Sequence record: OR608733.1
Strand: one strand, 5' to 3'
Length of the DNA stretch: 64,000 nucleotides
Shown: piece by piece, positions 44,352 to 48,722 of the stretch
Layout: each line of letters begins with the position of its first letter
Position numbering within the stretch: position 1 is the first letter of the stretch
Position numbers and translations under genes: made by a program
Notes under the pieces: generated by a model
The model's database searches: none
What the model saw: the letters and a program-made list of their open reading frames with translations, nothing else
Told to the model about the DNA's origin: nothing

Positions 44352-45515
44352 ATGTCTACTAAATCACAACTACCAAAGAAAATCTTCAATGCGGCTAAGA
44401 GTGATTATCATCTACCAGAAATTATTCTTGGAGATGACCCAGGTCTACTAGATTCAATCCACACTCATTATCCTAAAATGTGGGACCTATATAAGCGTCT
44501 AAAAATGCTTGATTGGGATGAGTTAGAATTTGACTTTTCTACTTGTCTAGTAGAATTTGAAACATGTGATAAATCAACTTATGACATGATGATTAAGACA
44601 CTGGCGTGGCAATGGGAAGCTGACTCTGTAGCCAGTCGTTCCATTGTTAATATTCTATCACCTGTCATGACTGATTCACGAGTATGGGCAGGATATGTAC
44701 GTATTAATGATAATGAAGACGTACATGCTTTAACTTATTCTGAAATTGTACGTAATAGCTTTAAAGATCCTAAAGTTATTCTAGATGAAATTCTTAGGGT
44801 AGAAGAAGCACAAGAACGGATGGTTGCAGTAGCCCGCACTATGGGTGAAGCACATGACGCAGTTCACGCGTATGCTCTTAATCAGGTACCCAATGATCAA
44901 GAACTTTACAATAAGGTATTCATGTTCTTCATCGCTCTATATTTCCTTGAGCGTATTCAGTTCATGGCATCCTTTGCTGTGACTTTCGCTATTGGTCGCA
45001 CCGGTGCATTCCAGCAAATTGCAGCTGCTGTTAAGAAGATTGCCCAAGACGAATTCGAAATCCATGCGCAATATGGCCAAGAAGTTATTCGTGCACTACT
45101 AGCAACTGAACGTGGTAAACTCGCTTATAGTCAATGTAAAGATAAAATCATTGAACTACTATGGGAAATTGTAAAGACTGAAGTCACCTGGGTTAATTAT
45201 CTATTCTCTGAAGGTCGTGAACTAACTGGCGTTAATGCGACTAAACTTATTAACTGGGTACTTTTCAATGCTAATGCCGCAGCAACATTCCTAAGTGTTG
45301 AAAATGATATTGTAGAACAGTATCAAGTAGAGTTTAAAGAATCGGCTGGATTTGATTTTGTTTGGCCAGAGAAGAACCCACTTCTTTATATGGAAGACTA
45401 CCTAGATATTTCATCAACCCAAGCATCTCCTCAAGAAGAAGAGAAACCTGATTACATGGTTAACGTTGTGAATGATGTTGGCGAAGAAGAAGAATTCGAA
45501 GTGGATTTCATGTGA
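44352..45515 (+). CDS. nrdB: Class Ia ribonucleotide reductase beta subunit
   Basis: WEADS, NEDVHALTY (radical Tyr), LERIQFMASF, DEFEIHA diiron motifs. Confidence 0.93.
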   Translation: MSTKSQLPKKIFNAAKSDYHLPEIILGDDPGLLDSIHTHYPKMWDLYKRLKMLDWDELEFDFSTCLVEFETCDKSTYDMMIKTLAWQWEADSVASRSIVNILSPVMTDSRVWAGYVRINDNEDVHALTYSEIVRNSFKDPKVILDEILRVEEAQERMVAVARTMGEAHDAVHAYALNQVPNDQELYNKVFMFFIALYFLERIQFMASFAVTFAIGRTGAFQQIAAAVKKIAQDEFEIHAQYGQEVIRALLATERGKLAYSQCKDKIIELLWEIVKTEVTWVNYLFSEGRELTGVNATKLINWVLFNANAAATFLSVENDIVEQYQVEFKESAGFDFVWPEKNPLLYMEDYLDISSTQASPQEEEKPDYMVNVVNDVGEEEEFEVDFM

Positions 45516-45928
45516 TGAATAAATTAATTCTTGTACTATCCTTAGTACTCGCATCTATGATTCTTGAAGCCAGTGAAATTAAAACAACCACTAATGGGAT
45601 TATTAAACAAGTCGATTGCCAACTTGTAGCTAAAGATAATAGTATCGCTGGTGCAACTATTGGAGGTACCGTAGGAGCTGCTGCCGGTGCTGCGGTAGGT
45701 AAAGCACTTCTTGGTAAATCGGGTAGTTGGATTGGAGGTCTGATTGGTGGGGCAGTCGGCGGTGCTATCGGTAATAACATGGCTGCAACAGAAACTTACC
45801 AATGTAAGATGATCATTGAAGATCATGGTAAACTGTACATGAATCAAATCGTCACAAATAAGAAGTTAGAACCAGACATGTCTGTAACTATTGTAGAAAT
45901 GTCTGATGGTACCTACGAAATAATGTAG
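45512..45928 (+). CDS. Exported glycine-zipper protein (SlyB/2TM-like)
   Basis: Signal-like N-terminus, then GATIGGTVGAAAGAAVG...GGLIGGAVGGAIG GxxxG repeats. Confidence 0.75.
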   Translation: MMNKLILVLSLVLASMILEASEIKTTTNGIIKQVDCQLVAKDNSIAGATIGGTVGAAAGAAVGKALLGKSGSWIGGLIGGAVGGAIGNNMAATETYQCKMIIEDHGKLYMNQIVTNKKLEPDMSVTIVEMSDGTYEIM

Positions 45929-46013: not shown

Positions 46014-47906
46014 ATGAATAAAATGCTAAACTTCCTAAACCGCACGCTATATAGCGGTACTGAAAAAGTATCTTCAAAAGCTACGCCGAGTCTAGAACAC
46101 TTTAAAACAAATGTTGAGCAAGTCGATAAAAAGATTCTACAACCCTTTAGTACTAAATTTAAAACCATTCTAAAAGAATGTTACAGTAATGAAGAGTGGG
46201 TTGAAGAACAGTCATTTATTGAAGAACCTATTGATCTTGGTTCAGCTGCACGCGGTCTTACCGAGCGCGGTATTATGCGTGGTGATTGGGGACGCTTAGC
46301 GCATTCCACTATTAAAGAAGCAGAAGGTATGATGCGTACTTATAGTGGTCGTCTAAATGAAGATATGGAGGCATCTGAAATTAATGAAGTAATTCAAGAT
46401 ATGCCTTATAACTTCACAGCTGGTTCAGCTAATACCAGTCGTTTAGAAGAAGATGATTCTATTTTTGTTGAGGCTGATACAACTGTAGTTGAACCTCTAT
46501 CTAAGCAGACTCTGCCAAAAGTAGCAGAGCTTACTAATCAATTAGTGGAAGTCTATAATCGAATTACCGAAGAATTTACAGAAACTGGTATTGCTAAAGT
46601 TGAACAAGTTGAGCAACCAGCAGTACTTGTAGCACTTGGTGAGATCATTAGTAGTTTTAATAAACTAATTGATTTATCGTGCGGTGCTCTACCAGTGGAA
46701 GAAACTGTTATTGTAGAAGAAGATCCGTTACCTGCTATTGTTACTGGTCCAACTACTGAACCCATTGATGGTGAAATCCCACCGGTTGATGCTATCAATA
46801 ATACCGCATTAGAAGAGTTTATTGAAGAAGTACTAAGTACTAATCCAGAATTTATTAAATACCAAAGTATGGGTGATAGTAATATTGATTCATATCTAAC
46901 TGGGGATGACTGGATTATACTAAAATTTAAAGATGGCTCTTATTATTTATACAATGCCCAAAGTGCTGGTGAAACGAATATAGAAATCATGAAAGATATG
47001 GCCGAAACTGGTAGTGGTCTTAATGGTTTTATAAATCGCGTTGTCCAGGGTGGCTATGTAGAGAAGACCATCGTTAATGAAATCGATAATAATCCCGGCT
47101 TTATGTATGTCTCAAATGAAGGTCTTATCGACACCATTAAGAGTATCTTCAACTCTGGCCCTGAGATCAATCTCGATAAAAAGAAGAAAGCTATTGCTAC
47201 GCTGAAAAGTACCTATGGTGACGCCAAATGGGTGGCAGAAGCAAAGCTTAAAACCGGCGAAGTAAAAGTATCGAGTTACGAGACGTTCGCGTCCAATGAT
47301 CCTAAGGCCGCAAAAGCCAATATCACTAATGCTGTAGCTAAAGCTGATCGTCACAACCAGAAAGTTCTAGATGAGAACAGTAAGATGCTAGCTCCCGTGG
47401 TTAATCTGTTCAAAGGGAATGATTGGCAAGACCCTAAGAAAGTCGCTACTCTTTTGGCCGAATGGAAACCTGATGTAAAGACAAACTTCCAAGAACCCAA
47501 ATGGCCCGATAATGCTGGTACTAAGATTAAGTTACTTGATGCTACCGGTATTGTGGAAGCAGCTAACGTTATCATTGATGTTCTGTCTAACAACACTAAG
47601 ACTATTGCGGACGCTTGGTTAGCCCAGTATCCTGACCTATCTGTCAATGGAGATATCTACAAACATAAGCTATCCACTATTAAAGATAAAGACGCTCTTG
47701 AGGACGTATATCTGCTGGCTAAACGGGCCGATAATATCATTCTTAACATTCATGCAGCGTACGACGATGCTAAGGTCGAATCTACCTATCGAGTATTTGC
47801 TATCGATATGTTGAAACTAATGCAAGCGTCTATCAGTAGCTTCCCAAGTGGTTCATCCGTAGAGAACACTAATGAACGCAATACGCTCATTGGTATTGAA
47901 GAATAA
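46014..47906 (+). CDS. Head/ejection protein (gp303-like), likely processed by prohead protease
   Basis: Internal VSNE-GLIDTIKSIF resembles the phiKZ S/A/G-X-E cleavage context; two LKxxYxxxxWVxE repeats; KTSC-like middle segment. Confidence 0.65.
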   Translation: MNKMLNFLNRTLYSGTEKVSSKATPSLEHFKTNVEQVDKKILQPFSTKFKTILKECYSNEEWVEEQSFIEEPIDLGSAARGLTERGIMRGDWGRLAHSTIKEAEGMMRTYSGRLNEDMEASEINEVIQDMPYNFTAGSANTSRLEEDDSIFVEADTTVVEPLSKQTLPKVAELTNQLVEVYNRITEEFTETGIAKVEQVEQPAVLVALGEIISSFNKLIDLSCGALPVEETVIVEEDPLPAIVTGPTTEPIDGEIPPVDAINNTALEEFIEEVLSTNPEFIKYQSMGDSNIDSYLTGDDWIILKFKDGSYYLYNAQSAGETNIEIMKDMAETGSGLNGFINRVVQGGYVEKTIVNEIDNNPGFMYVSNEGLIDTIKSIFNSGPEINLDKKKKAIATLKSTYGDAKWVAEAKLKTGEVKVSSYETFASNDPKAAKANITNAVAKADRHNQKVLDENSKMLAPVVNLFKGNDWQDPKKVATLLAEWKPDVKTNFQEPKWPDNAGTKIKLLDATGIVEAANVIIDVLSNNTKTIADAWLAQYPDLSVNGDIYKHKLSTIKDKDALEDVYLLAKRADNIILNIHAAYDDAKVESTYRVFAIDMLKLMQASISSFPSGSSVENTNERNTLIGIEE

Positions 47907-47925
47907 CTTACTGAGTATGTAATGA

Positions 47926-48063
47926 TATGTAGAAATAATCCCTCCCCCTTGTTTCTACATTAGTCATAATAGATCGGAGCCAGTCCCCCTTCCAACTGGC
48001 TCCCAGAGAGTAAAACTCTTTGCTGGGCATTAATGACGATATATCGCCTCCCTTCGGGGAGGC
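47926..48063 (+). ncRNA. Candidate sRNA with C-rich loops
   Basis: Own TATG promoter, perfect 9-bp stems 47927-35/47952-60 and 47976-84/47995-48003, third hairpin, closing stem, terminator 48046-48063; no ORF. Confidence 0.6.
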
Positions 48064-48126
48064 TTTATATTTTGTTTTTACGTATGTATATTAAAATATG
48101 TATAAACAACATAGAGTAATTATAAA

Positions 48127-48579
48127 ATGATCAAAAATGAACTTTTACCAGGGCTAATCTATGCCCAAAAAGAATTTGATAAAATTGCAGCTAATGTAAA
48201 AGACTATGATAAGTATAAAAGACGCGAAGCTGGTAGGGCAAGTGCCGTTTTAAGAAGTCTAGTGAGCAATATTGTAAATCAGAATAAACCATCCTCACTT
48301 GAACATGAAGGCAAAGTTAGTACTACTAATACTAATGAATATTTAGAAGAAGTTAATAATTACTTCTTTAACATTAATAATATTAAATTAATTTCTCCTA
48401 AACTCATAAAAGAGAAATTAACAATTGATCTAATGAATATTTATGTTAAATGGAATATGATTGGAGTGGCTGGCCGAAATGATGTTCCAATTATTGAACA
48501 CAGAATTAATGATTGGTGCGAAGTGACCGATGTCTACATTAATGGTAATAAGATAACTTCTTTACAATGGCCACGTTGA
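48127..48579 (+). CDS. Hypothetical protein (150 aa)
   Basis: Track ORF, GAG SD. Confidence 0.75.
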   Translation: MIKNELLPGLIYAQKEFDKIAANVKDYDKYKRREAGRASAVLRSLVSNIVNQNKPSSLEHEGKVSTTNTNEYLEEVNNYFFNINNIKLISPKLIKEKLTIDLMNIYVKWNMIGVAGRNDVPIIEHRINDWCEVTDVYINGNKITSLQWPR

Positions 48580-48637
48580 ATTTAAAATAAGTTGTAATAA
48601 AATACCTAGCATTACATGTTATGTATTGAAGCACAAT

Positions 48638-48722
48638 GCCCGAATGGTGAAATTGGTAAACACAGAAGACTTAAAATCTTCCGGCTACGGTCTTGTCGGT
48701 TCGAATCCGACTTCGGGCACCA
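48638..48722 (+). tRNA. tRNA-Leu(UAA)
   Basis: 85-nt cloverleaf, anticodon loop CTTAAAA, long variable arm, GGTTCGAAT, encoded CCA. Confidence 0.95.

Follow-up and report, generated by a model that had tools for sequence, protein, structure and literature searches.

A small RNA gene between gp303 and gp302

The window analysed here, a stretch of 64,000 nucleotides from sequence record OR608733.1, belongs to a phiKZ-type giant phage of Pseudomonas aeruginosa. Between the homologue of gp303 (46014–47906; PHIKZ303 is a head protein) and that of gp302 (48127–48579) lies a gap of 220 nt which holds a small RNA, intergenic, on the gene strand and directly upstream of the PHIKZ302 homologue; a tRNA-Leu/Pro cluster begins at 48638, beyond the gp302 homologue. 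In BLAST comparisons the small-RNA region is 100% identical to that of phages 124.01, 2PS and 6B, and phage 6B matches the window at 100% wherever the two were compared. Identity to phiKZ is 98%, the corresponding segment there (273948–274163, minus strand, 98.1% identity) lying between PHIKZ303 and PHIKZ302. The features of the locus, and of a second unit elsewhere in phiKZ to which we return below, are as follows.

47916–47929, plus strand: promoter core TATGTAATGATATG with two TATG boxes; transcription from the G of the second box, which the ONT adapter abuts at 47929
47929–48071, plus strand: whole non-coding RNA, about 142–143 nt; published transcript and ONT adapter and poly(A) junctions; in phiKZ about 274149–274009, minus strand
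47929–47958, plus strand: hairpin 1, GUAGAAAUAA/UUGUUUCUAC, a 10-bp stem with the 10-nt loop UCCCUCCCCC at 47939–47948; MFE fold
47963–48037, plus strand: three-way junction closed by stem P2, GUCAU (47963–47967) with AUGAC (48033–48037); covariation
47976–48003, plus strand: hairpin P3, GGAGCCAGU/ACUGGCUCC, with loop CCCCCUUCCA at 47985–47994; covariation
48004–48022, plus strand: hairpin P4, CAGAGAGU/ACUCUUUG, with an AAA loop; MFE fold
48046–48071, plus strand: intrinsic terminator GCCUCCC-UUCG-GGGAGGC followed by UUUAUAUU; phiKZ consensus, poly(A)-tailed contig ends at 48070/71
48083–48089 and 48097–48103, plus strand: two TATGTAT promoter-like boxes, outside the RNA and before the gp302 homologue; read from the sequence
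phiKZ NC_004629, about 212,850–213,040, plus strand: second conserved small-RNA unit, gp203/gp204, outside the window

An earlier reading of the letters alone (the sequence-only reading) had described at 47919–48063 an ORF-free unit with its own promoter and terminator, and every element that it listed is present in the sequence. The absence of coding capacity is borne out, the gap between gp303 and gp302 holding no ORF that is conserved on either strand when phiKZ, PS119XW and PhiPA3 are compared. A 40-aa ORF on the minus strand (47908–48030) does appear in the ORF scan and is annotated in phage 6B as hypothetical protein CDS0376. However, phiKZ, PS119XW and PhiPA3 lack it, no ORF of at least 15 aa occurs on either strand inside the 142-nt phiKZ RNA, the substitution pattern is that of RNA-type covariation, and both the published transcript and the adapter and poly(A) junctions indicate the plus strand. 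That this ORF is a real gene is thus exceedingly improbable, and it is most likely a mis-annotation.

The surroundings of the small RNA are mosaic. The gp304 homologue (45512–45928) is 99% identical to the version in 6B and 124.01 but 55.8% identical to phiKZ gp304, and the 3′ end of the gp303 homologue (46014–47915) is unrelated to that of phiKZ until 14 nt before the RNA start site; the small RNA itself is 98% identical to its phiKZ counterpart despite these flanks. A transposon study of phiKZ found the region from about orf184 through orf304, together with orf1–20, to be largely dispensable, reported that an orf302 insertion mutant adsorbs to strain Env201 and yields no progeny on it, and called gp302 a defence inhibitor (10.1101/2025.11.23.690004). 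The small RNA therefore lies in an accessory neighbourhood concerned with host interaction.

The transcript and its ends

Whether this RNA had already been reported for phiKZ was a question that the sequence-only reading had left open, and the answer is that it had. A 141-nt transcript upstream of PHIKZ302, labelled TU237 and ending at terminator T131, was described by Putzeys et al. (2024; microLife 5:uqae002, PMC10914365, Fig. 6B), whose northern blot bore out both its length and its abundance and displayed a longer read-through form as well, the short form being dominant. TU237 is one of 17 phiKZ ncRNA candidates from 5′ UTRs in that study, was classed as a product of premature termination within a 5′ UTR and was assigned no function (PMC10914365). 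An RNA from this locus was not reported in two previous studies, of which one predicted a single 75-nt phiKZ sRNA (Wicke, 2020) and the other described the 3′ UTR of PHIKZ298 and the 5′ UTR of p40 (Gerovac, 2021), and our literature search found no later functional work on it.

Twenty public runs from eight studies include 13 registered as RNA that carry the stretch, and ends and levels were read from Logan contigs, which cannot formally prove either. In two ONT cDNA runs the letters of the 5′ adapter (..TATTGCTGGG) are joined directly to GTAGAAATAAT, placing the 5′ end at 47929, and poly(A) tails follow positions 48070 and 48071 in ONT cDNA contigs; the RNA accordingly spans 47929–48070/71, or 142–143 nt, with the G of the second TATG as its first nucleotide. 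The summed contig depth over 47938–48073 is 100–500 times that over 48074–48617 in the two ONT cDNA runs, with depths of about 114,000–129,000 at the small RNA against 47–640 downstream in run X13, and of 1,800–2,300 against 15.5 in run X9. This suggests that read-through past the terminator is rare, under 1% by contig depth, which is a weak measure. In the contigs of run X9 the 5′ adapter also abuts the first base of tRNA-Leu (48638) exactly, marking a mature or a primary 5′ end.

The RNA of the window, like TU237 with T131, is a discrete transcript of about 141 nt with a TSS of its own, ending at an intrinsic terminator; it comes from the same locus and is 98% identical in sequence. It is the known phiKZ transcript TU237, real and very abundant. 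The proposal of a phage sRNA of about 135 nt was therefore right in substance and already published with a northern blot, with which the ONT contigs agree, the discrete species in public cDNA contigs being 142–143 nt. Its boundaries needed adjustment: an RNA does lie at 47919–48063, but it starts at 47929 and ends at 48070/71, in the U-tract. Whereas Putzeys et al. treat TU237 as derived from a 5′ UTR, we read it as an independent gene conserved beside gp303. Secondary structure, covariation, loop motifs, occurrence outside the genus and function do not feature in their main text, and these are the subjects analysed here. The transcript itself is thus known, and what is new is its conserved fold, its distribution over three genera and its motifs resembling the 16S rRNA tail.

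Promoter and terminator

The claim that the unit has a promoter and a terminator of its own stands, the former being of the TATG type and the latter a canonical phiKZ terminator. The promoter, TATGTAATG(A/T)TATGTAG, is kept in Phikzvirus variants, in Pawinskivirus and in PhiPA3, where it reads TATGTAATGTTATGTAG; phiKZ itself retains only TATGTAG. A scan of IMG/VR with the promoter pattern returned one PA7-like contig only. The UUUAUAUU at the 3′ end of the small RNA is a poor tail of the Hfq type. The terminator, GCCUCCC-UUCG-GGGAGGC-UUUAU, conforms in textbook fashion to the consensus BCCYCCCCHWWDGGGRRGGBYTTAT, derived from 61 phiKZ terminators (PMC10914365), and parts of the region consequently match about nine places per genome in BLAST. 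The two TATGTAT boxes lie between this terminator and the start codon of gp302, which therefore probably has promoters of its own.

A fold supported by covariation

The region is predicted to fold into a 5′ hairpin, a three-way junction with two hairpins and a terminator hairpin. Positions 47919–48076 fold at −56.4 kcal/mol (z = −6.6 against dinucleotide shuffles), the mapped 141-nt RNA gives z = −5.6, and none of 200 shuffles folded as well; the Pawinskivirus homologues fold into the same architecture. In ten distinct sequences from three genera, compensatory changes were found in 12 of the 32 base pairs of the model. Standard pairs fill 95.6% of cells, against 37–46% when partners are slid by one to three columns, and the observed covariation value was reached by none of 500 shuffles. 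The alignment of these ten sequences was fitted to the model, and with so small a sample the support from covariation is good, not statistically formal.

The evidence is spread over the individual helices. Five of the ten pairs of hairpin 1 and four of the five pairs of P2 have changed on both sides, with 100% of cells paired in P2. P3 is likewise paired in 100% of cells, with compensatory changes in two pairs, and six of its nine stem pairs never vary; in P4, paired in 92.5% of cells, one pair has changed on both sides. Judged from this alignment, compensatory changes maintain four predicted helices across the three genera, and the conservation among relatives that the sequence-only reading had named as a check on its structure is present. 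The closing stem GTCAT/ATGAC, the second hairpin (P3) and both C-rich loops are as it drew them. Hairpin 1 does carry a C-rich loop, but since the RNA starts at 47929 and not at 47919 its arms become GUAGAAAUAA/UUGUUUCUAC, enclosing UCCCUCCCCC. In the third hairpin the inner stem CAGAGAGU/ACUCUUUG is supported by covariation, whereas the outer extension CCCAG/CTGGG overlaps the 3′ arm of the second hairpin, is not kept in relatives and has been dropped.

Distribution in related phages

Two covariance models were built, R1 from five Phikzvirus variants and R2 from Phikzvirus and Pawinskivirus together. R1 recovers the Pawinskivirus copies at 49–53 bits, and R2 recovers at 58.8 bits a copy in PhiPA3 (Miltoncavirus), just past the gp303 homologue. 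With these models one copy per genome is found in phiKZ, PA7, PS119XW, PA1C, HPP-Temi and PhiPA3. The three genera that carry the RNA all infect P. aeruginosa. In Phikzvirus, Pawinskivirus and PhiPA3 the RNA always directly follows the gp303 homologue, whereas its downstream neighbour differs: gp302 for Phikzvirus, gp374 for PhiPA3 and, for Pawinskivirus (PS119XW, PA1C, HPP-Temi, LBG22 and others), tRNA-Leu, which comes straight after the RNA, gp302 being absent there.

The covariance-model search found no copy in 201phi2-1, EL or Psa21. A match in RVTF4 (15.6 bits) was discarded as a chance hit, being weak and antisense to a coding sequence. In 201phi2-1 the gap after gp455, the gp303 homologue, holds a different short unit on the minus strand, with the box TATATGTAAC, the terminator AAACCCACAGC..GUUGUGGGUUUUAU and no C-rich loops; it could be a small RNA of different descent at the equivalent site. 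Other short RNAs of the phiKZ family, namely the 3′ UTR of PHIKZ298, the 5′ UTR of p40 and the sRNA upstream of gp182 (in 201phi2-1, EL and PA3), detected by Grad-seq or ONT-cappable-seq, are likewise short, structured and bounded by terminators. They differ from the present RNA in locus and sequence, and the present RNA is absent from 201phi2-1 and EL.

Exposed C/U-rich motifs and the search for targets

The loops hold constant where the stems vary. The P3 loop carries CCCUUCCA, invariant in all ten distinct sequences from the three genera, and the loop of hairpin 1 keeps CUCC(U) in all three genera; UCCCUCCCCC and CCCCCUUCCA are unpaired in both the MFE and the centroid folds. The predicted Pawinskivirus fold also leaves UCACUCCU, AACCCUUCCA and a CU-rich linker single-stranded. 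Pawinskivirus and PhiPA3 share the single-stranded linker UCUCCUUGUUGUGUUGAUG (UCUCCUU), which is lost in Phikzvirus, and the Pawinskivirus linker adds GGUCCCCUCCUUU (CCCCUCCUUU). The 16S rRNA of the host clade, as read from an rRNA operon of Pseudomonas paraeruginosa, ends in ..CUGGAUCACCUCCUUA (..CACCUCCUUA), and the C/U-rich motifs resemble this 3′ tail. The Phikzvirus loops read CCCCCUU and would mismatch the canonical AAGGAGG. Stems that drift around loop motifs that stay fixed form the pattern expected of functional single-stranded seeds.

Staphylococcus aureus RNAIII and RsaE, Rhodobacter CcsR and the alphaproteobacterial cuckoo/ar14 RNAs are trans-acting sRNAs with C-rich, anti-Shine-Dalgarno-like loops. 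Like them, the present RNA is short, ends at a terminator and exposes several C/U-rich motifs in loops or linkers; unlike them, it is encoded by a phage, is predicted to be made by a phage RNA polymerase and has yielded no RBS targets in our searches. The likeness to cuckoo/ar14 RNAs drawn in the sequence-only reading is one of kind and not of homology, the ar14 family (RF02344) scoring 18.6 bits against a gathering score of 58.8 (E = 1.1). Among the curated Rfam families searched over 47891–48144 all matches are far below threshold and only the neighbouring tRNAs pass; permissive-threshold matches to ar14 (the same 18.6 bits), SNORD20 and the Phe leader were rejected as chance.

The sequence-only reading had proposed a repressor of host or phage mRNAs at G-rich RBSs. 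In a duplex scan based on crude gene calls for phiKZ, PS119XW and PhiPA3, the loops pair with phage start regions only 0.3–1.4 kcal/mol better on average than with gene interiors, and one loop segment pairs worse with start regions than with gene-internal windows. Among 155 orthologous triplets from the three genera no conserved target stood above chance, the best triplet reaching 2.4e-5 against a null median of 7.9e-5, which is within chance. An exact-complement search with both loops found no long complement in phiKZ RBSs, the matches in phiKZ falling only on the antisense strand of the gene itself, in terminators and in coding sequence. A GGAAGGG site which seemed conserved in PS119XW and PhiPA3 was rejected as antisense to a conserved gene. 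The genome of P. paraeruginosa, a close relative of the host, contains 16 exact complements of the P3 loop, all inside long ORFs; two of the 16 are followed after 16 nt by an in-frame start codon, and none of these exact matches was found at a start site. Target prediction thus returned no target in phage start regions, in orthologous triplets or among exact complements in P. paraeruginosa. Of the earlier interpretation the phage sRNA stands; repression at G-rich RBSs is plausible in kind, is still conjectural and is not favoured by these scans.

A second small RNA with an opposite motif

Between gp203 and gp204 phiKZ carries a second conserved unit, with a promoter box AATGATATAG, a long-range stem CAAGGCA/UGCCUUG and a terminator of the phiKZ type. 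Its segment CUUUAAGGGGGUGAUCCAG, which carries AAGGGGGUGAUCC, has the sequence complementary to the tail at the 3′ end of host 16S rRNA and is invariant in eight genomes of the Phikzvirus, Pawinskivirus and PhiPA3 genera, phage 6B included. The unit is absent from 201phi2-1, EL and Psa21 and occurs in RVTF4 as GAGGAGGUGAUCC. This predicted second RNA shares with the present one the same three genera, a similar promoter box and a phiKZ-type terminator, and its AAGGGGGUGAUCC is complementary to the C/U-rich motifs described above. The polarity of the motifs is opposite, however: that of the second RNA is G-rich and antisense to the 16S tail, whereas that of the present RNA is tail-like. The two also differ in RVTF4, which has the second RNA and in which the present one was not found.

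It is conceivable, if distinctly improbable, that the present RNA mimics the 16S tail, that its partner is the second RNA and that together they form a two-RNA switch. The second RNA would then engage or block the end of host ribosomes that finds mRNAs, and the very abundant tail-mimic would sponge the second RNA, or would vie for it with ribosomes, at a fixed time of infection. Counting both strands (560 kb), phiKZ has just four copies of AAGGGGG, to which CCCCCUU of the Phikzvirus loops is a perfect Watson-Crick match: one lies in the second RNA, two lie on the strand antisense to the present gene and the fourth is at another site. When accessibility is taken into account, the top-ranking interactions of the two RNAs run through the stretch of the second RNA complementary to the 16S tail in all three genera. 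Their net energies (−5 to −8 kcal/mol) rank 3/45, 1/45 and 14/45 against mRNA 5′ segments, and are unremarkable beside the 45 such segments taken from each genome. It also counts against a switch of this kind that C-rich and G-rich stretches pair by construction, and that RVTF4 has the G-rich RNA with no detectable tail-mimic.

A proposed trans-acting RNA and its alternatives

Exposed and conserved C/U-rich motifs on a stable, abundant scaffold point to a trans-acting RNA in which the loops would be the working parts. The reading that we tentatively put forward is that the locus may be an independent gene whose product, an abundant and stable non-coding RNA, acts in trans through pairing of its motifs with G-rich RNA. 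The phage's own RNA polymerase would transcribe it from the TATG-type promoter and the standard phiKZ intrinsic terminator would halt transcription efficiently. The RNA would then act late in infection, its C/U-rich motifs pairing with G-rich, Shine-Dalgarno-like RNA. Candidate partners would be the RBSs of host or phage mRNAs, or the second phage small RNA with its AAGGGGGUGAUCC. Against this reading stand the empty target scans, the poor Hfq-type tail and, in Phikzvirus, the mismatch of CCCCCUU to AAGGAGG.

The invariance of the P3 stem does not sit wholly with pairing, since six constant pairs out of nine, conserved beyond what pairing needs, would also fit a protein-binding site. P3 and the C/U-rich loops might then act as a decoy or scaffold that binds, titrates or recruits an RNA-binding protein of host or phage, such as one with a preference for C-rich or pyrimidine-rich RNA, a function to which the invariant CCCUUCCA, the very high abundance of the RNA and the empty scans for RNA targets would be suited. 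No candidate protein is at hand, however, the Rfam search found no known protein-binding RNA motif, and the 16S-tail-like motifs stand at different positions in each genus, which looks more like a pairing seed; we regard a protein decoy as unlikely.

The same RNA could be the terminated product of a cis-acting leader whose terminator, lying in a 5′ UTR, conditionally gates transcription into gp302 and the tRNA cluster. That it precedes gp302 and tRNA-Leu/Pro, and in Pawinskivirus sits immediately before tRNA-Leu, would agree with this, as would the premature-termination class given to TU237 and the read-through form on the northern blot (PMC10914365). What is conserved, however, is the position after gp303, the downstream gene varying by genus. 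Two TATGTAT boxes lie beyond the terminator, inspection of the sequence and its folds revealed no upstream G-rich segment complementary to the 5′ arm of the terminator, and the contig depth, weak as it is as a measure, suggests read-through under 1%. The conserved domain moreover folds independently of the terminator, and the conserved loops lie outside it. The variable downstream gene, the additional boxes, the lack of a visible antiterminator and the minimal read-through together weaken the case for a leader, which is rather improbable. It is more doubtful still that the RNA is a functionless by-product, a strongly folded fragment that accumulates by resistance to RNases. phiKZ does yield 17 such short RNAs from 5′ UTRs (PMC10914365) and the surrounding region tolerates transposon insertions (10.1101/2025.11.23.690004), but a by-product would hardly be expected to have a conserved promoter of its own, four helices maintained by compensatory changes around fixed loops in three genera, and a synteny that is kept despite mosaic flanks.

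Implications

The RNA described by the sequence-only reading is therefore real and was already known as a transcript, and the corrections to its boundaries and to its third hairpin are slight. To our knowledge, a function is known for very few small RNAs of virulent phages and for none of those of the nucleus-forming giant phages. Few short transcripts of phiKZ are as abundant as the present RNA, which lies in a dispensable region rich in host-interaction genes, beside the putative defence inhibitor gp302. Its fold, the constancy of its loops and the resemblance of these to the 16S tail make of an anonymous northern band a testable candidate regulator of translation during infection and, if true, pairing with the second phage RNA would be a new viral way of handling host ribosomes.
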